64,000 nucleotides of DNA from Octopus sinensis (taxonomy: Eukaryota): assembly GCF_006345805.1 (NCBI RefSeq), contig NC_043011.1:42296464-42360463 (forward strand). The letters run 5' to 3'. Under the pieces are notes generated by a model. The model was not told where the DNA came from. It saw nothing but the letters and a program-made list of their open reading frames with translations, and made no database searches. Of this stretch, positions 5,997 through 48,200 are shown in pieces (within the stretch, counting starts at the first letter, position 1; the number at the start of each line of letters is the position of its first letter). Both the position numbers and the translations under genes were made by a program.

Positions 5997-6420
5997 CATC
6001 ATCATCATCATCATCATCATCGTTTAACATCTGTTTTCCGTGCTAGCACTGGTTGGACGGTTCGATCAGGGTCTGGGAAGCCAGGAGGCTGCAGCAGGCT
6101 CCAGTCTGATTTGGCAGTGTTCCTACAGCTGGATGCCCTTCCTAATGCCAACCACTCCGTGAGTGTAGTGGGTGCTTTTTACGTGCCACCAGCACAGGTG
6201 TCAGGGGAGTCTGGCAGCGGCCATGATTGGCTGGTGCTTTTTACGTGCCACCGGCACAGAAGCCAGTCAAGGCAGCGCTGGCATCGGCCACGTTCGGATG
6301 GTGCTTTTTACGTGCCACCGGCACAGGTATCACAACTACTATTTCCATTGATATTTATTTCGATGTTCATGTACTTGACTCAATAGGTCTCCTCAAGCAC
6401 AGCAGGTTGTTCTGAAATCC
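5997..6420 (-). mobile_element. RTE-derived 3'-tail element (short truncated RTE or RTE-mobilised SINE); similar copies at about 4790-5030 -, 7750-8140 +, 11064-11310 -, 20590-20808 +, 26520-26715 +, 35348-35780 -, 36490-36745 +, 45265-45655 +, 46224-46600 -
   Basis: Shared terminus (CAT)n-cgtttaacgtccgctttccatgctagcatgggttggacgg is the same tail found on the RT-containing RTE copies at 32880-32905 and 40372-40410. Confidence 0.9.
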
Positions 6421-8598: not shown

Positions 8599-10108
8599 CT
8601 TGGGTTGTTTTTATGTAAACTTAGGGGTTTCACTTCAGAATTGATGTCGCTGCTGCTGTTACTGTTGTTTTCTTGCTTACTGTTATTGCCATGGTTACTG
8701 TTGAGGCTTTCATCACTGATGTTGCCTTCACTAGTATTGTTGCACTGATTCTGGCCTTTTCCTTGGCTCTTGCACTTATCTTTACCATCATCACTGTCCT
8801 TCTTTTCATCCTTACAATCACCTTTATCCTTCCCATCACCCTTACATTTTTCTTTATCCTTATCATCTTTACCCTTACAGTCGCCCTTACTCTTCCCTTC
8901 ACCCTTACATTTGTCTTTGTCCTTATCATCTTTATCCTTACAGTCGCCCTTACCCTTCCCTTCACCCTTACATTTGTCTTTGTCCTTATCATCTTTATCC
9001 TTACAGTCGCCCTTACCCTTCCCTTCACCCTTACACTTGTCTTTGTCCTTATCATCTTTATCCTTACAATCGCCCTTACCCTTCCCATCACCCTTACATT
9101 TGTCTTTGTCCTTATCATCTTTATCCTTACAATCGCCCTTCCCCTTCCCGTCACCCTTACATTTCTCTTTGTCCTTATCATCTTTATCCTTACAATCGCC
9201 CTTCCCCTTCCCTTCACCCTTACACTTGTCTTTGTCCTTATCATCTTTATCCTTACAATCGCCCTTCCCCTTCCCTTCACCCTTACACTTGTCTTTGTCC
9301 TTATCATCTTATCCTTACAATCGCCCTTACCCTTCCTTCACCCTTACACTTGTCTTTGTCCTTATCATCTTTACCCTTACAGTCGCCCTTACCCTTCCCT
9401 TCACCCTTACACTTGTCTTTGTCCTTATCATCTTTATCCTTACAATCGCCCTTCCCCTTCCCTTCACCCTTACACTTGTCTTTGTCCTTATCATCTTTAT
9501 CCTTACAATCGCCCTTCCCCTTCCCTTCACCCTTACACTTGTCTTTGTCCTTATCATCTTTATCCTTACAATCGCCCTTCCCCTTCCCTTCACCCTTACA
9601 CTTGTCTTTGTCCTTATCATCTTTATCCTTACAATCGCCCTTACCCTTCCGATCACCCTTACATTTGTCTTTGTCCTTATCATCTTTATCCTTACAATCG
9701 CCCTTCCCCTTCCCTTCACCCTTACACTTGTCTTTGTCCTTATCATCTTTATCCTTACAATCGCCCTTACCCTTCCCATCACCCTTACATTTTTCTTTAT
9801 CCTTATCATCATCATGCACCTTCTTAGCCTCAACTTTACCATTCTCCATGACTTTATTCGTATCATATCTATTCTGGTGCTTGTTGCACAACTTCCTCCA
9901 TATGGAAAACCGGAAACTATGTTTATCTCCATTAATGCCAGCCCCTGTAATGTTCTTACACAGGGTACTGGAGTTGCCTTGATAATTGTTGTCACCTTGG
10001 TTAGTGCTGTTACCTTGGTTACTGTTGTCAATGTTGTTAGTACTGTTACCTTGGTTACCATGGTCAACTTGGTTAGTGTTGTTATGTGAATTAACATCAC
10101 TTGTTATG
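8599..10108 (-). CDS. Candidate large symmetric (phase 2-2) exon encoding 16 x 21-aa KDKDDKDKDKCKGEGKGKGDC repeats flanked by Asn/Ser-rich segments
   Basis: Acceptor ttccttgttttcatattgcag|C at 10108 and donor CCA AG|GTAATG at 8599. Length is 1510 nt, or 1512 (divisible by 3) if two 1-nt homopolymer deletions at about 9310 and 9336 are repaired; the K/D frame is otherwise stop-free. Confidence 0.6.
8815..9825. repeat. 63-bp coding minisatellite, 16 units
   Basis: Unit atcatctttatccttacaatcgcccttacccttcccttcacccttacacttgtctttgtcctt, directly visible; unit count taken from the translations. Confidence 0.97.
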
Positions 10109-12334
10109 CTGCAATATGAAAACAAGGAACATTTTGAGTGAGGGGTGGTTGGTGGAGAGAAAACTGGGGTTTAAAAGGAAGATTTAAAAGTGTGTCACTA
10201 GGACAGATGGCTGGAAGTATTGGTGGATCAACTGTTGTACTGAAGCTGGGTCAGACAGGGACAGCGATGGGATTGTAGTGGGATGGTAGCAAGACTGTGG
10301 GGGGTTGTGATGGCACTATTGACTTCAGACATCTCCCTTGGGGGAGGGGCAAAACATCAGCAATGATTTTGAGGAAAAACTCAAGTGAATTTTGCAATGG
10401 TATTGAAGCAGCAAGAATGAATAACAGATTATCAATATTATCCCCAGATTACCAATGGCATTATCATCAAATCATCTGGAGAATATCATTGTTAACACTT
10501 TAGGTGATTAAGGTCATGTCGAATATAGTGTTTTGCCTACAGTTGTCTTGGACACTCATCCTGTGTCTTAGCAAATCAATACATTAGTCATCCACTCATA
10601 TCATCTGCCCTCCTCCCACCAAGTTTCTATACTGGTAATGGGTTGGGCAGTTCTTTATAATCCAAGACATTTGGTGCCCTCTCAGGTGAACTGAAGGTCC
10701 ATGCTGCATCTGATCATCTTTACAAAGTTTTGGCAGTTTCAGGGGTGAAAGGCTCTTCTGTAACATCAACCACATTACAGAGCAAAACTGGGTGGGGGCA
10801 GTTTCTTTAGACACCAGCACTGGAGAGGTTGCCCTACTTTCAGCAATACTAAAGAATCCTCTGCTCAATTCGCCAACCATTTAACAGAGTGCACTAGGTG
10901 CATTTCATCATGCCGTCAGCACGCACTGCTGAAGTCACCAAGTAACTCACAGAGTGAATAAAAGAGACATGGTGATATTATACACACACACACATTTATA
11001 CATACACACACACACACACAGACATATATATATATATATATTATATATATATATAAATGTCATCATCATCATTTAATGTCCGTGTTAGCATGGATTGGAT
11101 GGTTTAACCAGGGCTGGCAGGCTGGAGGGCTGCACCAAACTCCAGTCTAATTTGGCATGGCTTCTATGGCTTGATGCCCTTCCTAACACCAACCGCTCCA
11201 AGAGTGTAATAGGTGCTTTTACGTGCCACCAGCACGGGTGCCACTTGCATGACCTCAGTATCTGCCATGACTACAACATCACTCAGCTTGATGGATCTTT
11301 CTTCTCAATACTTGGCTTAAAAGTCATTTTCTAAAACACCCATCACACATGGACAATATTTTACAGTCGGATTCACGAAAAAGCTAACTGGAATCTTGTC
11401 AAAATACACAAAAAAGTTGAAGGTTTTACTTCATATGATTGGAAGAGATGATTCAGTTGGACAGCATATATACATATGCACACACACACACACACAACTA
11501 TTAATCTAGTTAACAGCTGCTTATGTAACTAACTATTGGGCTGTTAACTTTTTCCCCCCTGTTAAAGGTTTTCCCCCCAAAATTGAAATGCTCATAGTTA
11601 TAGCTCTATATACATCAAGCATATATATATATATAATACAAATAAGAAAATGGAGAAACAAATTTAGTTTGTTCATAAACTTACGGATATTATAATGTTG
11701 GATTATTTATTCATTTTGCAAATGAGAACATCAAAAGCATACAAAAAATATTATATAAATAAATAGATAATAATACAAATACAGATTTTAAAAGTCATAG
11801 TATAAATTAATGAAATCCTAAAGATTACTTCTTTCAGCTGTTTCAGCCTATGGTCAAAAGTAAATTTAATTTTCATTGCCTATAGATGTCAACATACTAA
11901 GGTTGTAGGCATTTAAAAAAAAAATACTTATATATTAAAAAAACCATAGGCCTCGTCAGAACTTTAAAAATATTAATATACTGAACATGATACACATATT
12001 ACTTAATATATAAAAAATAAACAATAAACAAATATCCAAATATACATATATATATATACATACAAATACATATATACACACATATACATAAGCAAAGCGT
12101 ATATACTATTCACATGCACAAAACACATTAATGAACACAATTAAACAATATATTCCAGTGGATATACCATATGTCATATACGTATATAAATACATTAGAA
12201 CATATAAACACGTCTATGCTTATCAGTAACAACAATATTATTGTATTAACAGTAATCTTCAACAGATCTTACATACTATAATAATGTCTACTAACAAATC
12301 AAAAATTCACGATACAAGATTCAATATATATATA

Positions 12335-12491: not shown

Positions 12492-13413
12492 GACCGCATC
12501 AGTGGTCCTTTGTTTTCTTCTCACTTATTTGTGTCTCTCCTTACTAACCGTCAGCCATTTTGTATTTCTATTGTATGTCTTCATTTGCGCATGCTTATAT
12601 CTCTATGTGCGTTTATGTTTATTTAGTGTGTGTATGTGGGGTATGCCTGTAATATTTGTATCTTCTGTTTATATATGTTCATGTAATTTGTAATTTTATA
12701 TGTTCATGTAATTTGTATTTTGTATTTTTTTTTGTTTTTTTTGTTTGTTTTTTGTTTTTGTTTTTGTTTATTCTTATTTTGTTCATGTGTTTACATCCAC
12801 CCATTATTATCATTACATATGCTTGTATGTATGTATGTATGTATAACAACAATACTAGTAATAATAATAATAAATTGAATTGAAAAAAAAAAATATTCTG
12901 ATTGTCTGGTTTATATGCTTATACACATGTATTTTTGTATGCATACATACATATATATATGCATACAAAAATACATGTGTATAAGCATATAAACCAGACA
13001 ATCAGAATATTTTTTTTTTCAATTCAATTTATTATTATTATTACTAGTATTGTTGTTATACATACATACATACATACATACAAGCATATGTAATGATAAT
13101 AATGGGTGGATGTAAACACATGAACAAAATAAGAATAAACAAAAACAAAACAAAAAACAAACAAAAAAAACAAAAAAAATACAAAATACAAATTACATGA
13201 ACATATAAAATTACAAATTACATGAACATATATAAACAGAAGATACAAATATTACAGGCATACCCCACATACACACACTAAATAAACATAAACGCACATA
13301 GAGATATAAGCATGCGCAAATGAAGACATACAATAGAAATACAAAATGGCTGACGGTTAGTAAGGAGAGACACAAATAAGTGAGAAGAAAACAAAGGACC
13401 ACTGATGCGGTCA
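12491..13413. repeat. Near-perfect palindrome, about 455-bp arms, about 12-nt loop
   Basis: 12491-12945 is the reverse complement of 12958-13413; the only differences seen are homopolymer lengths. Confidence 0.97.
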
Positions 13414-14223
13414 CAGAAATGTGATGAAAGAACTCTGGCCGAAATAAGATTAAGATTAATGTAAAAAATAAATAACACTGAAGCAAAGTAACACCAAATA
13501 TATAGTGCGTGTGTTTTTATTGGCTAAACTGGCAAAATGACCATTCCGAAATATAACAAAATCAGAATATAGTTATCATTTTATACATCCACATAAAGCA
13601 AACAAATTCAATTGTAAAATCCAAAAGAGTAATTCCTAACTTTTTGTCAAAGCTGAATTTAATCCACAATATTTATGCTTATATTATATGTATATTAAAG
13701 ATTTTCAAAATTATTAGGGGTTAGGGGGCGGTTATTTTAAATCAAGCTATTTCTAATTGGCTAATTCATTTGAACTTATCCGCTTGATCTGTTGTAAAAA
13801 ATAGGAGGTCAGATTATTAGTTAAATAAATGTACTCAAGTGGGTTAGTACATTCACACATACTTTATACATAACTATATACTAAATAACAAGTGTAAATA
13901 TATATCAATATACATAAATATATGGATATATCTACAAACAAATACAAGTACATAAAGAATATACAAATATGTACACACAAATAAACACTTATATATATAT
14001 ATATATATATAGTTTTTGCTAGAATATATATATATATAAATAGAATATATTTATATATATATAAACATATGCACTTACATATACATATATTACACACATA
14101 TACATACATATACAAATAACAATATGCCCATAACCCATTACAATTTCTGTACTCCTAAATATAATAAAGTAAAAGTGCTCATTATAACTAGTTGCATTTA
14201 TTTCAAAGGGTATTTTATAAGTA

Positions 14224-16915
14224 CTATTTATATCTGGAGAAAGTATACCCAATTTTATGGAGACATGAGGCATTACGTTCCTTAAAATTGTTAATAATCG
14301 GTAAATTACTCCTAATTATAAAGAAAATCTCGTTAATGCATAATGAGCGTTTTCTATTTTTCTGGTGCAGATATAAGTATTTTCCATTGTAAATTATAAT
14401 TTATTTTTTTATCCTTAAGTTCCCATATATATGCACTTAACCCTGTAGAATTACTCCTATTTCTATTTCTAAAAGTATATCTGTGCTAATTAAGTCTCTG
14501 TTTCAAATTATTCTTAGTAGCCTCGATATAGACTCTCTTATCAAATTGTGTATTTACTATACATTGATATACTACCTCCTTCCTCTTGCAGTCATTCTTA
14601 AATACACAATTTTTTCTAATCCTATAATTGCACCTATTAATTTGTTGTAGATGCTTTACTTTATTATGGTTAATTGTTACTGCATTATTATCATTATTTT
14701 AATGATTAATATTGTTATCATTATTACTTACTATTCCCATATCCACCGGCAGATTATTATTGGTATTATTGTTCTTATTTCTGTTATATTTTATGTTATT
14801 ATTACCTATAGTGTTATCATTACTAATTCTATTAATATTGTCCATGTTATTATTACTCGTTATAGTATTTCTATTAATATTATTGTCATTTCGATTAATA
14901 TTATTTATTCGCCAGCCTCGTCTGGCACCTGTGTCGGTGGCACATAAAATCACCCACTACACTCTCGGAGTGGTTGGCATTAGGAAGGGCATCCAGCTGT
15001 AGAAACACTGCCAGATCTGACTGGCCTGGTGCAGCCTTCGGGCTTCCCAGACCCCAGTTGAACCGTCCAACCCATGCTAGCATGGAAAGCGGACGTTAAA
15101 CGATGATGATGATGATGATGATATTATTATTATTATTATATCTTATGGTATTGTAAGACACATTTGTGTTACCTAAATTATTTTTTTCTATTTAGATAGA
15201 AATAATTAAGTTTTTTTATTGTTAATTGAGGATATGATGGTGGCCAGATTATGAGTTAGACTATATCCTATTCTTATAGTTTTATTATTAATTATCTCCC
15301 AATATTTGTTCTTTCCTTTTCCAAATTGCTTGTTTATTAAATTGAAAATATTTTTTACTATGTTATTTTTTATTTGCATAGCATAAGGAATTATTAACCA
15401 CAGTGTATCTATTACATTATTTTGATTATAAGGTTTTTCTATATTATCTATCATTTCCCTATTCTTATTATTTCTTCTATAATTTCTATAATCAATAGAA
15501 TTTTTATTATTATAATTTTGACTAAATGCTTTATTGTAGTTATTGTTATTATAATAACTCTTATTAACTTTATTATTTCTATTATTATTATTATTATTAT
15601 TATTTAATATATGATCTCTAATCCTATTTATACTATTACTAGTATTATTTTTATTCATATTTATATCATTTTTGTGATTATTCTTTTTATTTGGATTATT
15701 GTTATGCATGTCTAATCAGTGTTTATTAGTAGTTGTTAATTTATTCCTAGTATTAAGGTTGTTATTGGGGATAAATTTTATTTTACCACTATAACCTGCC
15801 CTATGTAATGTGGAGTTATACTTTTCACTATGTCTATTAAATATCTCTTCATTCAAAGAAAGGTTAGAAATCCTTTTACTTATGCTTAGTAGTAGTAGTG
15901 CTTTTTTAATTTGTGGAGGGTGATTACTAGAGCTATTTATATATCTTAAATTGGAACTTTGTTTCACATAAGGTTCATGGAGACCAGTATTAGGGTTACA
16001 ATTAACATCGAGATAATTAATAGAATAATTTTCATTTTCTATAGTAATGGATAGGCCAAAACTCTTTAAAAATTTATGCAAGCATTTCTTGAGTATTTCT
16101 AGTCTTCTATTTGATAGTTTCCTAACTAAAAATAAAGCGTTGTCTCAATTCAGGGAATTCTCTACTTAAATTATCTAATAAATAAATCCCAACCAAATAC
16201 GTCGTTTTCCGCTGAATCCGGCGAACCCATTGTAATGTCAAATAAGTCAGGCGTATCCTTTCTAGCCCATAATTTATTATCAAATTCTATAACAGTTTTT
16301 CTTGCCGTCAAAATTACCTTAATTTCCTTCATGCTAATATTAGTATATTTTCATGCTTTGTTAAGTATTATTGGGTTAATTGATGAATAATAATTTTGGA
16401 TATCAAATTGGATTAATTTATGGTTATAACCGTTATCAACCTTAATACTGGAAAACCATTCCAATGCACCTTGTGTGTTCTGCCATAAATTAAGCTTAAT
16501 TATATTTCTAATAATAGGTATATATTTATCCAGAATTAATTTACTTAATTTGCCTAAGTCCGATTTATTTGGACAGATACTAAACTGTGTAGTATTAAGG
16601 AAATTATCTTTTTGGTCCTTAATCGTTATCCGTGGTATAATTGGAGTAAAAGGTTCTGTTTTATCTTCTAAATTATAATCATACGTAATATTTCTAGCTT
16701 CCAAATTCAATTTTCTAAGTGTATCAAAAGGTACAACCTTATATTTTTTTGTAATTTCTCTGAGTAATAGTTCATGGTAAGTTTGAGTGTCAATGTTGTA
16801 TATAATACTAGTTTTATCCGAATGAGTTAAGATACCATCTTTACTCTTAAGAGTTCTGATAATTTCCTTCAGTTTTCTCTGGTATGTATTATGCCTTAGT
16901 GGATGATTCTTGAAA
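14224..16915 (-). pseudogene. Penelope-like RT-GIY-YIG polyprotein pseudogene
   Basis: Multiple frameshifts and stops. The catalytic YRDD region is reduced to agacaacgct, and an RTE-tail insertion at 14906-15120 interrupts the ORF. Confidence 0.88.
14906..15120 (+). mobile_element. RTE-tail element inserted into the Penelope-like ORF
   Basis: Close match to the reverse complement of 38822-39015; ends in (GAT)n. Confidence 0.9.
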
Positions 16916-17000
16916 ATTTGTTTATTGTTTATTTTTTATATATTAAGTAATATGTGTATCATGTTTAGTATATTAATATTAATATTTTTAAAGTTCTTTA

Positions 17001-18868: not shown

Positions 18869-19032
18869 TTATAGACAATATCCATCTTGTATGTTGTATT
18901 GTCTGGTGGTAGATCAGACCAAGGAGCAAATTTTAGTTTGGGACCAGAAAACCAGTTGCTGATGTTGGTGTTGGTGGCTGCAAACTTCAAGGTGAGGACA
19001 TCTTTATCAGCTTTTCTCAGAACTATTTTCAC
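18869..19032 (-). CDS. Coding exon 3 of the same gene
   Basis: Acceptor tttctctctttcttctccaag|GTG (phase 0, matches exon 2) and donor AA|GTGAGT (phase 2); 164 nt. Encodes VKIVLRKADKDVLTLKFAATNTNISNWFSGPKLKFAPWSDLPPDNTTYKMDIVY. Confidence 0.8.
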
Positions 19033-21401: not shown

Positions 21402-23698
21402 CATACAGGGCCTTCAATATTAGAAACTGTACTGCAGCATCCCTCCACAGAGTTACTCAACACGATAGGCGCTATAGTGTCCTTCCTTGGGGGGATCACT
21501 CAATTTGATAGAAATAGCATACAAATCTCCGTAAGATCCCTCCTTACAGTATTAAAATTGGAAGGACTTATTGTAAGGCATCAATTATTTCTTAGTAGCC
21601 TCGATATAGACCAGTTACGTTGGGATGATCATGGCTGGAACACTTTTGATCACAAGTCTGTTCAATAAAAGCTGCCCTAGGACTGAACAATATGTGTGAC
21701 ATGCATTTTAACTTGGGTTGCTTTGAAATGCATACAGGGCCTTCATATTAGAAACTGTACTGTAGCATCCCTCCACAGAGTTACTCAACACGATAGGCGC
21801 TATAGTGTCCTTCCTTGGGGGGATCACTCATTTGATAGAAATAGCATACAAATCTCCGTAAGATCCCTCCTTACAGTATTAAAATTGGAAGGACTTATTG
21901 TAAGGCATCAATTATTTCTTAGTAGCCTCAATATAGACCAGTTACGTTGGGATGATCATGGCTGGAACACTTTTGATCACAAGTCTGTTCAATAAAAGCT
22001 GCCCTAGGACTGAACAATATGTGTGACATGCATTTTAACTTGGGTTGCTTTGAAATGCATACAGGGCCTTCAATATTAGAAACTGTACTGTAGCATCCCT
22101 CCACAGAGTTACTCAACACGATAGGCGCTATAGTGTCCTTCCTTGGGGGGATCACTCAATTTGATAGAAATAGCATACAAATCTCCGTAAGATCCCTCCT
22201 TACAGTATTAAAATTGGAAGGACTTATTGTAAGGCATCAATTATTTCTTAGTAGCCTCGATATAGACCAGTTACGTTGGGATGATCATGGCTGGAACACT
22301 TTTGATCACAAGTCTGTTCAATAAAAGCTGCCCTAGGACTGAACAATATGTGTGACATGCATTTTAACTTGGGTTGCTTTGAAATGCATACAGGGCCTTC
22401 AATATTAGAAACTGTACTGTAGCATCCCTCCACAGAGTTACTCAACACGATAGGCGCTATAGTGTCCTTCCTTGGGGGGATCACTCAATTTGATAGAAAT
22501 AGCATACAATCTCCGTAAGATCCCTCCTTACAGTATTAAAATTGGAAGGACTTATTGTAAGGCATCAATTATTTCTTAGTAGCCTCGATATAGACCAGTT
22601 ACGTTGGGATGATCATGGCTGGAACACTTTTGATCACAAGTCTGTTCAATAAAAGCTGCCCTAGGACTGAACAATATGTGTGACATGCATTTTAACTTGG
22701 TTGCTTTGAAATGCATACAGGGCCTTCAATATTAGAACTGTACTGTAGCATCCCTCCACAGAGTTACTCACACGATAGGCGCTATAGTGTCCTTCCTTGG
22801 GGGGATCACTCAATTTGATAGAAATAGCATACAAATCTCCGTAAGATCCCTCCTTACAGTATTAAAATTGGAAGGACTTATTGTAAGGCATCAATTATTT
22901 CTTAGTAGCCTCGATATAGACCAGTTACGTTGGGATGATCATGGCTGGAACACTTTTGATCACAAGTCTGTTCAATAAAAGCTGCCCTAGGACTGAACAA
23001 TATGTGTGACATGCATTTTAACTTGGGTTGCTTTGAAATGCATACAGGGCCTTCAATATTAGAAACTGTACTGCAGCATCCCTCCACAGAGTTACTCAAC
23101 ACGATAGGCGCTATAGTGTCCTTCCTTGGGGGGATCACTCAATTTGATAGAAATAGCATACAAATCTCCGTAAGATCCCTCCTTACAGTATTAAAATTGG
23201 AAGGACTTATTGTAAGGCATCAATTATTTCTTAGTAGCCTCGATATAGACCAGTTACGTTGGGATGATCATGGCTGGAACACTTTTGATCACAAGTCTGT
23301 TCAATAAAAGCTGCCCTAGGACTGAACAATATGTGTGACATGCATTTTAACTTGGGTTGCTTTGAAATGCATACAGGGCCTTCAATATTAGAAACTGTAC
23401 TGTAGCATCCCTCCACAGAGTTACTCAACACGATAGGCGCTATAGTGTCCTTCCTTGGGGGGATCACTCAATTTGATAGAAATAGCATACAAATCTCCGT
23501 AAGATCCCTCCTTACAGTATTAAAATTGGAAGGACTTATTGTAAGGCATCAATTATTTCTTAGTAGCCTCGATATAGACCAGTTACGTTGGGATGATCAT
23601 GGCTGGAACACTTTTGATCACAAGTCTGTTCAATAAAAGCTGCCCTAGGACTGAACAATATGTGTGACATGCATTTTAACTTGGGTTGCTTTGAAATG
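21402..23698. repeat. Tandem array of seven 327-329-bp units in intron 2 of the minus-strand gene
   Basis: Unit starts (catacaggg) at 21402, 21731, 22058, 22387, 22714, 23041, 23370. Units differ by single-base deletions and a few substitutions. Confidence 0.98.
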
Positions 23699-24901: not shown

Positions 24902-25053
24902 CTCATTAATATTAAGAGAATCCCAGACATCAAGGATAGAACTTCTGTAGAATTCAGAATGAGGGCGACTTCGATTATGTTTGCCAAAGAATACATCAGC
25001 AGGGCTAGACATGGAATTGGTGTTGAATGAGAAGGCTTTATACCACGAAGAGT
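24902..25053 (-). CDS. Coding exon 2 of the same gene (start of Trp-rich uncharacterised domain)
   Basis: Long pyrimidine tract ending ttctcttcaag|AC, phase 1, completing G|AC = Asp with exon 1. Donor GAG|GTAAAC, phase 0; 152 nt. Encodes DSSWYKAFSFNTNSMSSPADVFFGKHNRSRPHSEFYRSSILDVWDSLNINE. Confidence 0.8.
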
Positions 25054-26031: not shown

Positions 26032-26392
26032 CGTAAGTCTGTATGTAGGAAACATCTTTCCATGAAGACGAGGTGGTAATCATTTGCCAATCGGAGAACC
26101 TCTCACATTTCCTCTTCCTCCAAAAGGTGAAAAAGGTGCAACTCGGTGATTCCATGCAAAATACGCTGCACTCAATAACACTGCGCACCCTCCTCTCTTG
26201 ACGATGACGGCTTCCATTGATGCCAAAGGAACGTCTGAAATTCTTGGTGGGAATCTTTCTGTAAGTTACATTTCGAACCATGTTGGATTGTGAAATTGCA
26301 GCCTGTTGACAAATGGTGCAAAAAACGTGCAGAAACAACAACAGTCGCAACAGATGGTCAGCCCTTTGTATGAGTTTCTCTAGAAGTTTCAT
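26032..26392 (-). CDS. Coding exon 1 of a spliced minus-strand gene: signal-peptide-like N-terminus + PAN/apple-like module
   Basis: Acceptor ttgcctttatctttcag|TA ATG (exon starts 26394, ATG 26392) and donor TAC G|GTAAGG at 26032/26031 (phase 1). Translation MKLLEKLIQRADHLLRLLLFLHVFCTICQQA...RSVIECSVFCMESPSCTFFTFWRKRKC. The C-x3-C-x5-C-x-F-x-F-x5-C pattern resembles the 4-Cys PAN core (recognised by eye, no HMM run). Confidence 0.8.
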
Positions 26393-29220: not shown

Positions 29221-29342
<122 letters not shown>

Positions 29343-29355
29343 GTATATATATATA

Positions 29356-29902
29356 GGGAGAGTTTACAAAAAAAACAAAAGACGAAAACAGGTTGTGTAC
29401 AAAACAAACAGATGTGTGTATATATATATACACACACTTACATACAAGGTGTTGAAAAATTCTTGGCTTTAGGGGTATCACGAAAGATCTGGTTGGAGGC
29501 CCAACCTTCTGTGTTCTTTTACAGGGCTTAGAAAAACTGAAGGACCGCTGCAATAATTGTGTGAATCTGAGAGGAGAATGTTGAATAAAATCATAATTAA
29601 CTGATTCTCTGGAATTTTGTTTTATCCAAAGCCAGAAACCTTTCAGCAACACCTCATGTGTGTGTGTGTGTGTGCTAGAGTTTGAGGTAAATGGACAGTG
29701 AAAGTGAGGTAAACTGTGGAAAATCTGGAGAGGACAGGTGGAGGAGGAGGAGGTTGGGAGGGTTGGCTTGAGAAGGTAGGATGCCCAAAACCAGGCAAGA
29801 TGGGGAGATGGTGGGAGGGTGATTGCTATGGCATTGAAGTAGATCCAGCCACCCCCGTTAACAGGGACAAAACCCAAATTCAAAATGATGGATGATGATG
29901 TG

Positions 29903-29972
<70 letters not shown>

Positions 29973-30521
29973 GGGAGAGTTTACAAAAAAAACAAAAGAC
30001 GAAAACAGGTTGTGTACAAAACAAACAGATGTGTGTATATATATATACACACACTTACATACAAGGTGTTGAAAAATTCTTGGCTTTAGGGGTATCACGA
30101 AAGATCTGGTTGGAGGCCCAACCTTCTGTGTTCTTTTACAGGGCTTAGAAAAACTGAAGGACCGCTGCAATAATTGTGTGAATCTGAGAGGAGAATGTTG
30201 AATAAAATCATAATTAACTGATTCTCTGGAATTTTGTTTTATCCAAAGCCAGAAACCTTTCAGCAACACCTCATGTGTGTGTGTGTGTGTGCTAGAGTTT
30301 GAGGTAAATGGACAGTGAAAGTGAGGTAAACTGTGGAAAATCTGGAGAGGACAGGTGGAGGAGGAGGAGGTTGGGAGGGTTGGCTTGAGAAGGTAGGATG
30401 CCCAAAACCAGGCAAGATGGGGAGATGGTGGGAGGGTGATTGCTATGGCATTGAAGTAGATCCAGCCACCCCCGTTAACAGGGACAAAACCCAAATTCAA
30501 AATGATGGATGATGATGTGAT

Positions 30522-30589
<68 letters not shown>

Positions 30590-31160
30590 GGGAGAGTTTA
30601 CAAAAAAAACAAAAGACGAAAACAGGTTGTGTACAAAACAAACAGATGTGTGTATATATATATACACACACTTACATACAAGGTGTTGAAAAATTCTTGG
30701 CTTTAGGGGTATCACGAAAGATCTGGTTGGAGGCCCAACCTTCTGTGTTCTTTTACAGGGCTTAGAAAAACTGAAGGACCGCTGCAATAATTGTGTGAAT
30801 CTGAGAGGAGAATGTTGAATAAAATCATAATTAACTGATTCTCTGGAATTTTGTTTTATCCAAAGCCAGAAACCTTTCAGCAACACCTCATGTGTGTGTG
30901 TGTGTGTGCTAGAGTTTGAGGTAAATGGACAGTGAAAGTGAGGTAAACTGTGGAAAATCTGGAGAGGACAGGTGGAGGAGGAGGAGGTTGGGAGGGTTGG
31001 CTTGAGAAGGTAGGATGCCCAAAACCAGGCAAGATGGGGAGATGGTGGGAGGGTGATTGCTATGGCATTGAAGTAGATCCAGCCACCCCCGTTAACAGGG
31101 ACAAAACCCAAATTCAAAATGATGGATGATGATGTGATTATATATATATATATATATATT
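29356..31160. repeat. Tandem triplication of a 617-bp unit bounded by (TA)n
   Basis: Unit starts (gggagagtttac) at 29356, 29973, 30590. Each unit contains a mariner MITE and a purine-rich segment. Confidence 0.97.
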
Positions 31161-31290: not shown

Positions 31291-32905
31291 CGAGTATAGT
31301 GAAGAACGTGTATAGTGAAGAATTCCAGGTAGAAGTAGGGGTCCACCAAGGTTCAGCCCTTAGTCCCCTTCTATTCATCATAGTCCTCCAAGCAATAACA
31401 GAGGAATTCAAGACGGGTTGCTCCTGGTAGCTCCTCTATGCTGATGACCTGGCCCTCATAGCAGAATCACTACCGGAACTAGAAAAGAAATTTCGGGTGT
31501 GGAAGCTAGGTTTAGAATCGAAGGGCCTTAGAGTAAATGTAGCAAAGACCAAAGTTATAGTAAGCAGAAAGGCGAACTCATCACACTTGGGCAGGTGGCC
31601 CTGCTCGATCTGTAGAAAAGATGTAGGTAGAAACTCTATAAGATGTATCCAGTGTAAGATATGGATGCATAAGAGGTGCAGCAACATCAAAGGAAAATTA
31701 ACTGAGAAGATAGCTTTCATGTGCAGCAGATGCACAGGGGCAATAAACACCACAGATTCTCAGAAAACAGATTCCATCACACTCCAGGGGAAGAAGCCAG
31801 AAGTAGTTGATAGTTTCCGCTACCAAGGTGACCAAGTTAGTAGTGGAGGTGGATGCTCAGAGAGTGTCACCACTAGAATACGAATAGCCTGGGAAAAGTT
31901 TAGAAAGTTCCTACCCCTACTGGTGACAAAGGGTCTCTCGCTCAGAGTGAAAGGTAGATTGTACGATGCATGCGTGCGAACTGCCATGCTTCACGGTAGT
32001 GAAACATGGGCTGTGACAGCAGAGGACATGCGTAGACTTGAAAGAAATGAAGCTAGCATGATCTGCTGGATGTGTAATGTCAGTGTGCACGCACGACAGA
32101 GTGTAAGCACTCTGAGAGAAATGCTGGACATAAGAAGCATCAGATGTGGTGTGCAAGAGAGACATTTGCGCTGGTATGGTCATGTACTGTGGATGGATGA
32201 GGAGAGATGTGTGAAGAAGTGCCACTCCCAAACAGTTGAAGGTATCAGGAGGAGAGGTAGACCCAGGAAGACATGGGATGAGGTAGTCAAGCATGACCTT
32301 CGAACGTTGGGCCTCACAGAGGCAATGACGAAAGACCAAGATCTCAGGATATATGCTGTGACTGCAAAGACCCGGGCTGCTTCCTGCACCAGTCTTGCAT
32401 AGCCCCAGCCCATTCAAAGTGCCTTGGATTGCAGAATGACCTGCCTTGCTTACCTTGGATCATAGGGTGACCTGCTGTGCTTGAGGAGACCTACAGAGTC
32501 AAGTACATCAATATCAAAATAAATATCAAATGGAAATTGTAGTTACGATACCTGTGCTGGCGGCACATAAAAAGCACCATCCGAACGTGGCCGATGCCAG
32601 CGCCGCCTTGACTGGCTTCTGTGCCGGTGGCACATGACCTGCTGTGCTTGAGGAGACCTATTGAGTCAAGTACATCAACATCAAAATAAATATCAAATAG
32701 AAATTGTTGTTGTGATACCTGTGCCAGTGGCACATAAAAAGCACCCACTGTACTCACGGAGTGGTTGGCATTAGGAGGGGCATCCAGCTGTAGAAACACT
32801 GCCAGATCAGCCTGGAGCCTGGTGCAGCCCCTTGGCTTCCCAGACCCCAGTTGAACCATCCAACCCATGCTAGCACGGAAAACGGACGTTAAACGATGAT
32901 GATAA
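31291..32905 (+). mobile_element. 5'-truncated RTE LINE: RT C-terminal half, 3' UTR, (TGA)n tail
   Basis: VHQGSALSPLLF, LYADDL (stop just upstream), 301-aa ORF 31497-32402 with Cys-rich insert and LRWYGHV...GRPRKTW. Confidence 0.95.
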
Positions 32906-33344: not shown

Positions 33345-35322
33345 TCTATATATATAAAACTCTAGTTGTGTGAGTGTCTGTCCCCTTCGATTTAGATTCC
33401 TAACTCCTCCCACATTTTGCAGTGCAGTTTAACCAAATTCGGGTATCTTATAGTCGTGATTCATATCGAGCCCGTCTGACTATTAGCGCGCGTCAACGAT
33501 GAGTCTACGATTTTAAAAATAATTTAACATCATTTTTTATTCCATTTTAATGCATAAAATGCATCGTATGTCGATGGCGGCGGAGTTGGCGTCCACGCTC
33601 ACAGCTGCACCTGTTTGCTTCTCCCCCTTCCCTCCCTCGTGAAGCTGTGGGGAAGGGAGTGTAAAGAAATCAACGTCGTAATGCGTTGTGAAGGAAACCA
33701 GCGTTCTTTTAGAACAACAACTTCATGGCTTGAAGACACCAAAACAAAAATGGCTAAGAAAGCCCGAATTTATAAGGGAAGTAACTCTCTAAAAATGCTT
33801 ATATAGTTACAAACCCGAGCAACGCCGGGCGATACTGCTAGTATATATATAAAAGTAAAGTTGTGTGAGTGTCTGTCTCCTAGGATTTAGATTCCTAACT
33901 ACTCCCACATTTTGCGGTGCAGTTTAACCAAATTCGGGTATCTTATAGTCGTGATTCATATCGAGACCGTCTGGGTATTAGCGCGCGTCTACGATGACTC
34001 TACGATTTTAAAAAATAATTTAACATCATTTTTTTCCATTTCTTCCAAATTTTTCGTGTGTCGATGGTGGCGGAGTTGGCGTCCACGCTCACACCTGCAC
34101 CTGTGTTGCTTCTCCCCCTTCTTCCCTCCCTCGTAAAGTGTGACTACGCAGTCACACTTTCGCGCATGCGCAGTCACACATTCGCGCATGCGTAGTCACA
34201 CTTCGCGCATGCGCAGTTACACATTCGCGCATGCGCAGTCACACGTTCGCGCATGCGTATTCACACGTTCGCATATACGTAGTCACACTGGGGCATGCAT
34301 AGTCACATATCCGCGCATGCGCACTCATACTTTCGCGCATGCACATTCACACTTTTGCGCATGCGCAGTTACACGTTCGCGCATGCGCAGTCACACATTC
34401 GCGCATGCGTAGTCACACTTTCGCGCATGCGCAGTCACATATCTGCGCATGCGCTTGTTCGCGCATGCGCAGTCAAATTTTCGCGCATGCGCAGTCGAAC
34501 GTTCGCGCATGCGCAATCACTTTCGCGCATTCACACTTTCACGCATCCGCAGTCGAACGTTCGCGCATGCGCAGTCACATATCCGCGCATGCGCATTCAC
34601 ACTTTCGTGCATGCGCAGTTACACTTTCGTGTAGCCACACGTTCGCGCTTGTGAGGTCACACTTTCGCGCACGCGCAGTAACGTTCGCGCATGCGCAGTC
34701 ACACGTTCGAGCATGCGCATTTAAACTTTCGCGTAAGCGGAGTCACACGTTCGCGCATGCGCAATCACACATTCATGCATGCGCAGTCACACTTTCGCGC
34801 ATGCGCAGTCACACGTTCACGCATGAACTCGTTCGCGCATGCGCAGTCGTACCTTCGCGCATGCGCAGTCGTACCTTCGCGCATGCGCAGTGACACGTTC
34901 GCGCATGCGCAGTCACACTTTCCACAAATCTTTATATATAAAAGTGAAGTTGTGTGTCTGTCTCCTACAATTTAGATTCCTAACTACTCCCACATTTTGT
35001 GGTGCAGTTTAACCAAAACCGGGTATCTTATAGTCGTGATTCATATCGAGCCCTTCTGGGTATTAGCGCACGTCTACGATGAGTATACGATTTTCAAAAT
35101 AATTTACCATCATTTTTTTCCATTTTAATGCATTTTTTGCTATTATATAAGGGAAGTAACTCTCTGAAAATGTCTCCGATGAGTCAACGATTTAAAAAAA
35201 AATTACTATAATTGTTTTTCCATTTTTAATGCATTTTTTTGCTATTTTTGGCTATAACTCTCTAAAAATGCTTTATAGTTATTTCCCTTACAAACCCGAG
35301 CAACGCCGGGCGATACTGCTAG
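33345..35322 (+). mobile_element. Head-to-tail cluster of non-autonomous Helitron-like elements (three 5' ends, two 3' ends)
   Basis: 5' ends TC(T/A)TATATATAAAA at about 33345, 33843 and 34929. 3' ends have hairpin CCCG-agcaacgc-CGGG followed by CTAG|T at 33838-33841 and 35319-35322. Confidence 0.8.
34140..34920. repeat. CpG-rich about 22-bp minisatellite with GCGCATGCGC core, inside the Helitron-like cluster
   Basis: Unit approximately ttcgcgcatgcgcagtcacac(g/a/t); about 20 intact GCGCATGCGC cores counted by eye. Confidence 0.95.
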
Positions 35323-38809: not shown

Positions 38810-40060
38810 ATCATCATCATCATCATCATCATTTAACGTCCGCTTTCCATGCTAGCATGGGTTGGACGGTTCAACTGGGGTCTGGGGAGCCCGAAAGCTG
38901 CACCAGTCCAGTCAGATCTGGCAGTGTTTCTACAGCTGGATGCCCTTCCTAACGCCAACCACTCCGAGAGTGTAGTGGGTGATTTTATGTGCCACCGACA
39001 CAGGTGCCAGACGAGGCTGACAAACGGCCACGCTCGGATGGTGTTTTTTATGTGCCACCGACACAGGTGCCAGACGAGGCTGGCAGACGGCCACGCTCGG
39101 ATGGTGTTTTTATGTGCCACCGACACAGGTGCCAGACGAGGCTGGCAGACGGCCACGCTCGGATGGTGTTTTTATGTGCCACCGACACAGGTGCCAGATG
39201 AGGCTGGCAAACGGCCACGATCGGATGGTGCTTGTTACGTGCCCACAGCACGGAGGCCAGTCAATGCGGTACTGGCTACGGCCACGTTCGGATGGTTTTC
39301 TTATGTGCCACGTGCCACCGGCACTGGTACCACAAAGATACAAATTCCATTGATGTTCATCTATTTTGATTTGTTTTGATTTGATTTTCACTTGCCTCAA
39401 CAGGTCTTCACAAGTGTCACAAGAAGGAGGTATGCACAGGTGGACTGACTACGTCCCAGGTAGGGGCCATGGGTTATGGCCTGACTAGTCTTGCCGGGTC
39501 TTCGGATGGTGTTTTTATGTGTCACCGACACAGGTGCTAGATGAGGCTGGTGAACGGCCACGATCGGATGGTGTTTGTCATGTGCCCACCGCACTGACTA
39601 CGGCACTGATGGATTTCTTGTGTGCCACAGGCACTGGTACCACAAGATACAAATTCCATTGATGTTCATCTATTTTGTCTATTTTGATTTGATTTGATTT
39701 GATTTTCACTTGCCTCAACCGGTCTTCACAAGTGTCACAAGAAGGAAGGAAGGTATGCACAGGTGGGCTGACTAGTCTTGCCGGGTCTTCGGAAGGTGTT
39801 TTTATGTGCCACCGACACAGGTGCCAGATGAGGCTGGCGAACGGCCATGATCGGATGGTGTTTGTTACGTGCCCACAGCACGGAGGCCGGTCGATGCGGA
39901 ACTGGCTACGGCCACGTTCGGATGGTTCTCATGTGTGCCACCGGCACTGGTACCACAAAGATACAGATTCCATTGATGTTCATCTATTTTGATTTGTTTT
40001 GATTTGATTTTCACTTGCCTCAACAGGTCTTCACAAGTGTCACAAGAAGGAAGGTATGCA
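38810..40060 (-). mobile_element. RTE 3' UTR with internal about 61-bp minisatellite and larger about 290-bp block duplications
   Basis: (CAT)n tail at 38812-38831; repeated atggtgtttttatgtgccaccgacacaggtgccagacgaggctgg units; repeated cacaagtgtcacaagaagg blocks at about 39410, 39730 and 40030. Confidence 0.9.
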
Positions 40061-44706: not shown

Positions 44707-47574
44707 GAGGTGTTTGAGTAAAGGAAAATACAGGAGGATCAGTAAATTATGATTTTATTCAACATATTCCCCTCTCAGATTCACACACTTATTGCAGCAG
44801 GTCTTCAGTTTTTCTAAGCTCTGTAAAAGAAGGTTGGACCTCCGGCTAGGCCTTTCACGATACCTTTAAAGTCAGAAACTTTTCAGCATCCCACATGTGT
44901 ATGTGTGTGTGTGCTTTCTTTTTGTTTTGGCATCAGATAATGCCTGTTAATGAGTCATACATGCAAAATATTGTTTGTTTCTAGTCTTCCATGAAAAAGA
45001 TCTCCAGCAGGTGAGGGTGAGTGACAGGAAAGGCACCCAACCATAGAAAATTTGCCTCAACAAACTCCATTTGGCCCATGCAAACATAGAAAATGAAGTA
45101 CATATACATCACCATGGGATCAAAGAACTGACAGAAAAGTGGCTTCAGACAGTGCAACAAGATGGCCTCTACTTTGAACACTTGGCTGCCTTTGTTGTGC
45201 CTTTATGAATAAAGCAAATAAGTTACCAAAACTTTTGACTGAACACTATATATATATACCCGCTGTTCTTGAGGAGACCTATTGAGTCAAGTACATCAAC
45301 ATCAAAATAAAAATTCAAATGGAAATTGTAGTTAAGACACCTGTGTCGGTGACAATGTAAAAAGCACCGTCCGAACGTGGCAAATGAAAGCGCCACCTGA
45401 CTGGCGTCTGTGTCGATGACACGTAAAAGCACCAACCGATCGTGGCCGTTTGCCAGCCTGCTCTGGCCCCTGTGCCGGTGGCACGTAAAAAAACACCCAC
45501 TACACTCACGGAGTGGTTGGCATTAGGAAGGGCATCAAGCTGTAGAAACACTGCCAAATCTGACTAGAGCCTGGTGCAGCCTAATGGCTCCCCAGACCCC
45601 AGTAGAACTGTCCAACCCATGCTAGCATGGAAAGTGGATGTTAAATGATGATGATACATACATACACAAACATACGTGTACATACAGTGATTGGTTTCTC
45701 GATAGACTTGGCAGGCTGAAACTGAAGGTCACAATATCTAAGAAGCCTCTAACGAAGGTGTATATCAATGTCCACAATGTCACTGTCCCCACCTACATAT
45801 TCTCTCGTAATACACTGTAGTCTCCAAACATTTTCCCTGCCCTCCATTTCAGAATAATATTGATTTAAGCCAATAAAATGGCACTAGCATTGATTTTTGT
45901 ATTGATCTTACACTTCTAGGAAAACAGTAAGATCAATATTTTGAAAAAACAGCCGTGCAAGTAGCAGGAGATTACTGTATCTATTTTCTGATTATCGTCA
46001 GATTAAAAGATTTTAAGATGGTGCTTGTAGAATGGTGAAAAGTCAAGACGAATCTGTGTTTTCTTGTATCAGCCATGGACGGAAACAAGTGCCAGCAGTG
46101 AAGCAGAGACATTGATACTAATACAGGGAAGCCAGTCTGGTGGAGATACCCAGTGCCATCCACTAGTTTCCAACCAGAAGAACAACCTCTCAGAAACGGA
46201 AACAGAATTACAGGATGTGGAACATCATCATCATCATCATCATCGTTTAACGTCCGTTCTCCATGCTAGCATAGGTTGGACGGTTCGACCGGGGATCTGG
46301 GAAGCCAGAAGGCTGCACCAGGCTCCGGTCTTATCTGGCAATGTTTCTACAGCTGGATGCCCTTCCTAACGCCAACCACTCCGTGAGTGTAGTGGGTGCT
46401 TTTTACGTGCCACCTGCACTGGTGCCAGGCGAGGCTGGCATCGGCCACGGTCGGATTGGTGCATTTTACGTGCCACCTGCACGGAAGCCAGTCGAGGCGG
46501 CACTGGCTTCGGCCACGATTCGGATGGTGCTTTTTACGTGCCACCAACACGGAAGCCAGTCGAGGCGGCGCTGGCATCGGCCACGATTCGGATAGAGCAA
46601 TGAACTGATTATGAAGTGGCAACCATGATGGCTCAAACTGAAAATATAGAATTGAAAAGTCACTTACCAGATGTGGAGAGATTTAAAGAACCATGAGAAG
46701 ATATCATAGGTCATCAGAATTTCCATTTCACAATAGGTATGATAGGCCAAGTCCAAAGTATTCCTTGTACAGCTCAGCCGATGCTAAATACAGACTTACC
46801 TTAACAGATGTTAGTTTGCCAATGGGATTATTACATCATAAAGTACCTTATTGAATAGAGAAGAACCCCCTCTTGTGTTTGTCATTGTTGTGGTTTATCT
46901 TTAAATTCCAAGTGAATGCATGAAAAGTATGCCAGGTTTTGCATAAAAGCTCTATTAGTCAACAAAATTCAATGGGGAACCACACAGACAAATGGTTTGT
47001 TTATTTCTCTTTCATAAACTACGGGCATTCAAGGACAACAGTTTGTATCTGGATTTCAGATGGCAATGATATACAGGAGATGGTTGATTGTTCTTGTTTA
47101 GTTACCCATGATTTTTGCATTGCCAGTTATTGTGGGTGCAGTTTGCTCAGACCAACTGATATCCCTTATCCATGACTCACCAGACTTGATGAATTTCCAT
47201 ATTTGCCCTTCATCGCGTAGGTTTATTGTTTTGTTTGTAAATTCTTTCCTAACTTTGCATCTTCTGCTTCAGTTATAGATTCTGAAGGGTTTTGATGACA
47301 GTTGAAATTTATGCCCTATCTAAATTCATGGAAACTCAGGAAAACACAGGAATGTCATGTTGAGCAAGCTAACAAAGGAGGGAGGGCAAATGTTGACTTC
47401 AAAGCTAGAGAAACCTATAAAAACAAAACAGGGGCAGCGATGGCATTCATAAAGAGACTTATTGTTAGAATATGCAGTCTTGAAGAACATGGCTTAATCT
47501 TTTAAAACTAGCAGCAAAATTTGATTGATTTTTTTTTTCTGGCTCATAAGAATCAATATGGAAATTATAGTTTG

Positions 47575-48200
47575 TTAGTTAGTTAATTTTTTGGCTCAAA
47601 AAGCAAAAAGCAAGGCCATGTAGGGGGACATGGAGTTATGTACAGGGTGGTGTTCATGTAAAGAGTTCAGGCCACTTGAGGTCAAGGGAGACTTTGAACT
47701 GAGCGGTCATCGGCATCTTCACCATCTCGTCTGGCAGCTTATTCCACAGATCCGCAACCCAGACAGAGAAAGCCCCTCTCCTTCGATTGAGATGAAATGG
47801 TTGCAGATAGAGCTTTTCGGAATGACCCCACAGCTGACGCTCTGGAGCAGGAGTGAAGAACAGCTCTTTCGAGAGGTTACACTTTCCGCTTATGATGTTG
47901 TGAGCAAGAATGAGACCTCCACAGCGTTGTCGTTTTTCTAGAGAATAAAGGTCGAGCGTCTTCAGCCTTTCTTCATAAGACAAATTCTTGAGACCAAGAA
48001 CCATGCGGGTAGCCAGCTTCTGGACTTCATCGAGATGCTGTATGTCTTTGAGGAGATAAGGAGAAGAGGCTTGAATCCCGTACTCCAATATGGATCTCAC
48101 CAGCGTGACATAGAGCGGTAGGAATAGGCTGCTGTGAGCATTCCGAATGACTGTCAAATCAAGAACAGAATTCCGCGTGCTTTGTTGGCAGCATGATCAC
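47575..48200 (-). mobile_element. CR1-clade LINE 3' fragment
   Basis: LYVTLVRSILEY, QKLATRMV.GLKNLSYEERLKTLDLYSLEKR, RRGAFSVWVADLWNKLP. Confidence 0.93.

Follow-up and report, generated by a model that had tools for sequence, protein, structure and literature searches.

Can a 1510-nucleotide (nt) segment that carries a long coding minisatellite, and whose reading frame is broken twice, be a genuine exon placed in the middle of a folded domain? The locus that raises this question lies on the minus strand at positions 8599–10108 of a 64,000-nt stretch of the Octopus sinensis genome (assembly GCF_006345805.1, contig NC_043011.1, positions 42,296,464 to 42,360,463), referred to here as the window and numbered from its first letter. 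We call the segment exon X. An earlier note, made from the letters of the window, had proposed it as a cassette exon that can be included in or skipped from a gene with a lectin-like domain. Here, we compared the locus with its counterpart in Octopus bimaculoides and with public protein collections. We consider it likely that exon X is a true coding exon, internal to a gene of the octopus lineage, with frameshifts that are probably assembly errors.

Splice sites and the O. bimaculoides orthologue

The acceptor of exon X reads ...ttcatattgcag|C, with 10108 as the first exonic base, and the donor reads ...CCAAG|gtaatg, with 8599 as the last. All exons of the gene lie on the minus strand. Exon 3 (VKIVLRKADKD...KMDIVY; 18869–19032), located with tblastn, ends AA|gtgagt in phase 2. 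Exon 4 (CAFCIFVDDFRIWLMVSN...GNPE; 2719–2867) starts ag|G at 2867, where the C-terminal domain resumes, and ends G|gtaaga in phase 1. The splice sites and the phase 2 assigned earlier to exon X, to the exon 3 donor and to the exon 4 acceptor are correct, as judged from reading the sequence and from identical boundaries in O. bimaculoides. Exon X is in phase 2 at both ends and has 504 codons (1512 nt) once two bases are added. Skipping it gives an in-frame ...DIVY-K-CAFC... across the exon 3/exon 4 junction.

The O. bimaculoides orthologue is XP_052830469.1 (601 amino acids [aa]), in a cluster that also holds UniProt A0A0L8IDZ1, XP_014773361.1, and XP_014773369.1. All four models contain the exon X orthologue with identical boundaries (N|ITSDV...KNNP|R), and both splice sites are conserved. 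With an orthologue of exactly these boundaries, exon X can be placed in the same gene as exons 3 and 4, as had been supposed. We reject the alternative, also raised earlier, that exon X belongs to a separate gene, because the sister-species models link it to both neighbours and the frame fits.

The orthologue of exon X is already present in public gene models, but under misleading names such as that of XP_052830469.1, “probable serine/threonine-protein kinase clkA”; A0A0L8IDZ1 is labelled “Apple domain-containing protein.” Reading the orthologue as a clkA kinase, or as a “GATA zinc finger” protein, is a composition artefact; Pfam finds no kinase or GATA domain in it. A literature search found no paper on the protein or its family.

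Repeat anatomy and composition

Exon X consists of three parts. The head (9811–10108) is Asn/Ser/Gly-rich and non-repetitive, with six N-x-S/T sequons. It is followed by a coding minisatellite of 16 × 63 bp (8808–9810, units in register), for which Tandem Repeats Finder reports a period of 63 bp, 16.0 copies, and 95% matches. The last part (8599–8807) contains a degenerate last unit and an Asn/Ser-rich tail with another six sequons, and ends AG|gtaatg. Translation gives 15 near-identical CKDKDDKDKDKCKGEGKGKGD units, with degenerate end units, between the two arms. The 16-copy, Cys-periodic Lys/Asp array with Asn/Ser-rich flanks described earlier is thus recovered by both Tandem Repeats Finder and translation.

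The composition of the 504 codons is strongly skewed, with 29% Lys, 22% Asp, 15% Gly, and 7% Cys. The 36 Cys residues are separated alternately by 9 and 10 residues. In the repeat core, charged residues make up a fraction of 0.55, Lys and Asp alternate, and the net charge is slightly positive. All 12 N-x-S/T sequons of exon X fall in the two arms.

The O. bimaculoides orthologue matches this gene in exon order, likewise carries N/S-rich arms around a K/D/E/G/C repeat core, and has 85% aa identity outside the insert. Its repeat differs in its smaller length and irregular units, among them CKDEEKDKEKCKGNGKGKGD, CKDEEKDKEKCKGD, and CKDEEKCKGKGKGD. The Cys gaps are 3, 5, 7, or 9 residues (range 3–9) rather than alternating 9/10, and Glu is found where O. 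sinensis has Asp. The repeat number in O. bimaculoides is uncertain, because the chromosome-level assembly (CM046618.1) has a 79-N gap in the repeat exon (locus positions 13356–13434), which the RefSeq protein bridges, and because protein length varies between assemblies (557–579 aa, with values of 557 and 579, vs 601 aa).

We searched for relatives of the repeat and of the whole exon. No Pfam family matched the repeat at an expectation value (E) ≤ 10, including Cys-repeat modules such as EGF, thrombospondin type 3, and metallothionein. Among PDB sequences, the sole matches were to the Lys-rich ribosomal protein eL29 at E ≥ 0.3. A homology search of 5.8 billion proteins with the exon X translation returned O. 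bimaculoides XP_052830469.1 as the sole homologue, and a repeat-trimmed, two-species profile again found this orthologue alone. As far as these searches reach, exon X is octopus-specific, with no relatives outside octopus. The word-indexed protein search is lossy: with the skipped isoform as query it gave no match at all, and so missed an 85%-identical orthologue that a full HMMER scan found at E = 2e-151. Absence from word-indexed searches is therefore weak evidence.

Coding potential of exon X

Three independent signals (in-frame indels, third-position bias, and pN/pS, the ratio of nonsynonymous to synonymous differences) indicate that exon X is coding. When the head and tail were aligned to O. 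bimaculoides, all seven internal insertions or deletions (indels) were multiples of 3. They measure 3, 9, 3, 24, and 3 nt in the head (84.5% nt identity) and 18 and 27 nt in the tail (88.5% nt identity). In the adjacent upstream intron, the indels are 3, 1, 1, 1, 12, 13, 1, and 56 nt, of which two of eight are multiples of 3 (Fisher p = 0.007 for the comparison). The frame preservation that the earlier proposal implied for other octopus genomes is thus found in O. bimaculoides, where every indel keeps the frame and the repeat unit and copy number differ.

The array itself carries a codon signature. The 15 core units show 14 variant types, of which 10 affect third positions of the CKDKDD frame (binomial p = 0.004), compared with 2/14 for each of the other frames; the variants seen most often either are synonymous or exchange Asp and Glu. 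Codon constraint is therefore seen in one frame. Furthermore, the unit length is a multiple of 3 in both species, being 63 bp here and 42, 54, or 102 nt in O. bimaculoides.

The pN/pS values against O. bimaculoides are 0.60 for the head, 0.72 for the tail, and 0.60 for exons 1–4. Since exon X behaves like the rest of the gene, it appears to be under the same weak purifying regime as this fast-evolving gene as a whole. Exons 1–4 and the flanking intron are 92.4% and 92.5% identical to O. bimaculoides, respectively, and exon X falls below its adjoining intron. We attribute this excess divergence to slippage-prone, low-complexity sequence.

The two frameshifts

The assembled exon X leaves a remainder of 1 when its 1510 nt are divided by 3, and two adjacent units are 62 nt long. 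With the units in register, the first contraction lies at 9335–9336, with GG in place of the GGG of other units, and the second lies in the next unit at 9309–9310, with AA in place of AAA (both minus strand). Adding one unknown base per contraction gives 1512 nt and 504 codons. The two 1-nt homopolymer deletions reported earlier, and the multiple of 3 that their repair restores, therefore hold. We saw no other damage in the gene, neither in exons 1–4 nor in the ~500 nt of exon X outside the repeat.

A second array in the window serves as a control. This non-coding array of 329 bp × 7 lies in intron 2 (21402–23698). Its copies differ by only two substitutions but by six 1-nt homopolymer contractions, each present in a single copy. 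The contractions are AA to A in three cases, AAA to AA in two, and GGG to GG in one; there are no expansions, and deletions outnumber substitutions 3:1. The contraction rate is ~3 per kb, compared with 2 in the 1 kb of the exon X array. Because contractions of the same type and at a similar rate occur in the control, the exon X frameshifts are probably assembly errors. A one-directional 3:1 excess of homopolymer indels points to uncorrected long-read consensus error, in arrays beyond the reach of short-read polishing, rather than mutation. The O. bimaculoides chromosome assembly also breaks down in this repeat exon, at its 79-N gap. The earlier suggestion of long-read errors is thereby supported, and we regard assembly error as very probably the source of both frameshifts. 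The control array is also a warning for coding calls in other long arrays of this assembly. An exact look-up of the frameshift-truncated open reading frame (ORF; 9304–10125) in public assemblies returned no record.

Several observations weigh against exon X being an intact coding exon. The error signature is not uniform, because three other repeats in the window (617 bp × 3, 102 bp × 3, and 62 bp × 4) have no 1-nt contractions. The two deletions are just 26 nt apart, which would be rare for independent random errors, and both the errors and the inclusion of exon X in O. sinensis are judged from assembled sequence and gene models. No O. sinensis protein was among the matches of the exon X, skipped-isoform, and profile searches. 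A pN/pS near 0.6 indicates only weak constraint, and the sister-species gene models are predictions that may share a bias toward open frames.

Some of these points suit the idea that the deletions are real, in which case exon X would be broken in this species or haplotype and the gene would be a young pseudogene or would work only via exon skipping. Both deletions are, after all, present in the assembly as given, in adjacent units. However, the rest of the 2.3 kb of coding sequence is undamaged, and the contractions are of the same type as the six in the 329-bp array, a pattern that fits an error process better than mutation. We therefore think it improbable that the deletions are real. A further reading is that exon X is a minisatellite without coding function within an intron, and that its chance open frame deceived the O. 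bimaculoides gene predictors. The array is purine-rich, and two of three sense and all three antisense frames are open across it; since 5/6 frames are open, the open frame alone is not evidence of coding. The lack of Pfam and PDB relatives, with a single O. bimaculoides model as homologue, is also compatible with this idea. Yet chance openness would not confine indels to multiples of 3 or bias variants toward the third codon positions of one specific frame, and the ~500 nt of non-repeat flanks are open in the identical frame in both species between conserved splice sites. An accidental frame is thus extremely unlikely, and a coding exon X with assembly errors remains our preferred explanation.

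Gene structure and domain identity

Next, we traced the remaining exons. Exon 1 (26032–26392) starts with the ATG at 26392, encodes a hydrophobic, signal-like N-terminal segment and the PAN/Apple domain, and ends G|gtaagg in phase 1; it was found by tblastn with XP_052830469.1 at 80% aa identity. Exon 2 (24902–25053), placed by tblastn and by reading the splice sites, opens a C-terminal domain of ~170 aa. Conservation within the family is highest in exon 3, which is matched by more than 40 relatives. Exon 5, with 16 codons in the O. bimaculoides gene, falls outside the window, before its first letter, also on the minus strand. The gene product thus starts with a hydrophobic signal, continues with a PAN/Apple domain, and ends in a beta-rich C-terminal domain; it is probably secreted.

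The introns flanking exon X (18868–10109 and 8598–2868) are 8.8 and 5.7 kb long; in O. bimaculoides both measure only ~0.9 kb. Over its whole length the gene covers more than 26 kb in O. sinensis and 6.5 kb in O. bimaculoides, and the excess consists of repeat and transposable-element insertions.

The PAN/Apple assignment is solid. Pfam PAN_1 matches residues 61–105 of the window protein with 23.2 bits (cut-off 21.4), and a PAN match is found in 15/60 relatives with a best E-value of 6.8e-8. Foldseek matched the PAN fold to the HGF N domain, Eimeria and Sarcocystis PAN modules, and AMA1 with probabilities of 0.97–1.00 and target-normalised template modelling scores (TM-scores) of up to 0.69, at E-values of only 0.03–0.1. 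Outside PAN, neither the window protein nor its orthologue has a Pfam match.

The C-terminal domain is harder to place. Pfam Fibrinogen_C matched 4/60 relatives at E ≤ 0.01 (best 4.6e-5). Foldseek gave probabilities of 0.3–0.6 to intelectin-1, fibrinogen fragment D, FGL1, and Angptl3, all at E > 0.01 and with a large root mean square deviation. These are weak signals of the fibrinogen-related domains (ficolin, intelectin, FGL1, angiopoietin-like) and do not establish membership. The “lectin-like” label used earlier for this domain is therefore a tentative lead.

Insertion point and origin of exon X

A full HMMER scan of 1.84 billion representative proteins with the skipped isoform found 76 relatives. 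Many of these are ~210–300 aa long and share the architecture of the query, and their alignments run through the exon 3/exon 4 junction without a break for an insert. No further family member was found when the relatives were matched against the window. We fixed the insertion point from the exon structure of a five-exon O. bimaculoides paralogue, P0008 (CM046628.1). Its phase-2 intron 3 lies exactly 18 residues past an invariant PW, as in the window gene. The earlier claim of an insertion into the middle of a globular domain is borne out by these insert-free alignments and by the P0008 intron at the same residue. Because a phase-2 intron exists at the identical point in the paralogue, exon X was born inside a pre-existing, conserved intron.

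The five-exon paralogues share with the window gene a signal peptide, PAN, and the ~170-aa domain with the motifs FFR..ILD.W, VKLVLYK, NWFS, and SPW.DL, and they differ in having no exon within intron 3. The window gene differs from them in turn, as the segment after the insert has lost the family motifs GC..D.GWL and C.W.

In the AlphaFold model of P0008, with a mean predicted local distance difference test (pLDDT) score of 87.5, the insertion residue (225/226) falls in a loop between strands 218–220 and 228–235. For the O. bimaculoides orthologue, the model has pLDDT <50 in the insert (residues 224–538), 80–94 in the preceding parts of the domain, and 93 in the last strand. The insert is thus predicted to be disordered, and in these models the hairpin-like loop is a site that can tolerate a long disordered excursion. 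We propose that exon X would have arisen within the family's conserved phase-2 intron 3 and that the 63-bp coding minisatellite would then have expanded it. Its inclusion would loop out ~500 residues between two beta-strands of the C-terminal domain.

Use of exon X in splicing

Whether exon X is always included, sometimes skipped, or used as a last exon bears directly on the form of the protein. The cassette proposal holds that tissues switch between a compact PAN-plus-globular isoform and a long polyampholyte isoform. It is consistent with phase 2 at both junctions and with the fact that in-frame skipping restores the ancestral architecture of the relatives; furthermore, recently born exons are often alternatively spliced. 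However, equal phases are not evidence for alternative splicing, because they are required of any intron-born exon with a readable downstream domain. All four O. bimaculoides models include exon X, and models X1 and X2 differ at the N-terminus alone. Three skipped isoforms that we constructed were absent, by exact look-up, from a collection of 15 billion proteins. At 1.5 kb, exon X is also far above the typical length of a cassette exon, and conservation of the adjoining intron sequence does not rise above the ~92–94% background of the introns. We therefore regard regulated skipping as rather unlikely, with inclusion as the rule in the available models.

The other proposal is a terminal exon or retained intron, in which read-through of the donor gives AGG TAA and the transcript ends at a nearby ATTAAA, for a protein without the last two exons. 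Read-through does yield ...NNPR-stop, and an ATTAAA lies ~150 nt downstream (8449–8444), a motif that is also present in O. bimaculoides. The read-through argument, which had been put forward earlier, is a weak one, as any phase-2 donor of the form AG|GTAA produces AGG TAA, and an AT-rich intron will often contain ATTAAA by chance. Neither exon 4 nor exon 5 is damaged, both are conserved, and every model joins them to exon X. A terminal exon X is accordingly very unlikely, and we continue with exon X as an internal exon.

Possible product and significance

In the internal-exon form, the product would carry a loop with glycosylatable, Asn/Ser-rich arms around a polyampholyte core in which Lys, Asp, and Gly are well mixed and each 21-residue unit has two Cys. 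In the polymer theory of polyampholytes, well-mixed sequences stay expanded and solvated. If the protein is secreted and oxidised, the two Cys per unit could form local loops or inter-chain cross-links. From the two-species comparison, selection appears to keep the reading frame, the charge mix and composition, and the presence of Cys, but not exact sequence or spacing. A precise metal-binding or structural module is unlikely, because O. bimaculoides does not keep the strict 9/10 alternation of Cys. A role of the insert as an extracellular spacer or in a cross-linkable matrix, adhesion, or ion binding is plausible. A more specific picture would be an octopod-restricted extracellular material protein, with a disulphide-cross-linkable, well-mixed Lys/Asp polyampholyte on a loop of a domain that binds carbohydrate or protein. 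Skipping of exon X would then give a soluble binder, and its regulated inclusion a component of a cross-linked matrix, an adhesive, or an ion binder; we hold this to be a long shot.

Exon X is a lineage-specific coding-minisatellite exon, exonised inside a domain-splitting intron. As such, it offers a clear, datable case of an exon born in a conserved intron mid-domain and then inflated by a coding minisatellite. For annotation, we recommend that exon X be retained in the O. sinensis gene model and that the frameshifts be flagged as probable assembly errors, not as signs of a pseudogene. If it is expressed in secretory tissue, the product would be a candidate biomaterial protein.

Other features of the window

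Elsewhere, the window is made up of repeats and pieces of transposable elements, and its second half apparently holds no host gene. Within the intron upstream of exon X, the region 14000–17000 is very AT-rich (GC content 26–30%) and contains minus-strand ORFs at 15206–15709, 15719–16144, and 16354–16935. These ORFs are long and Asn/Lys/Ile-rich, have no Pfam match, and may represent a decayed mobile element of foreign composition. Retroelement fragments lie at 53680–54156 (plus strand), 31497–32402 (plus strand), and 47654–48157 (minus strand), with a reverse transcriptase (RVT_1, E = 3e-25) that has frameshifted neighbour ORFs, and with a PHD-finger ORF.

Three tandem ~617-bp copies, 99.2–99.6% identical and flanked by TA/TG microsatellites, occupy 29300–31160. 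They differ by substitutions and one 2-nt microsatellite indel only, and the strongly positive GC skew at 28–32 kb is due to them. A 62–68-bp unit (GGTG(C/T)TTTT(T)A(C/T)GTGCCACC...GGCCACG.TCGGAT) forms short arrays at 6171–6327, 38978–39311, and 46395–46593, with dispersed copies elsewhere. It is also present in O. bimaculoides loci and is apparently a family typical of octopus genomes that resembles short interspersed nuclear elements (SINEs). A GC-rich minisatellite of 22 bp × 37 (CGCAGTCACACTTTCGCGCATG) at 34147–34922 has an open frame of 184 aa, probably accidental.

Comparison with mucin repeat exons

Exon X resembles the coding minisatellite, or variable number tandem repeat (VNTR), exons of secreted proteins, such as the Pro/Thr/Ser (PTS)-repeat exons of mucins. 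In both, a tandem repeat with a unit length divisible by 3 runs in frame through one large exon. Its copies are homogenised within each species, and its unit and copy number vary from one species to another. Both also encode disordered sequence with glycosylation-rich flanks, and both are hard to assemble. Exon X differs from the mucin exons in composition, with Lys/Asp/Gly/Cys and not Pro/Thr/Ser, and in position, as it lies inside a folded domain and not between domains.

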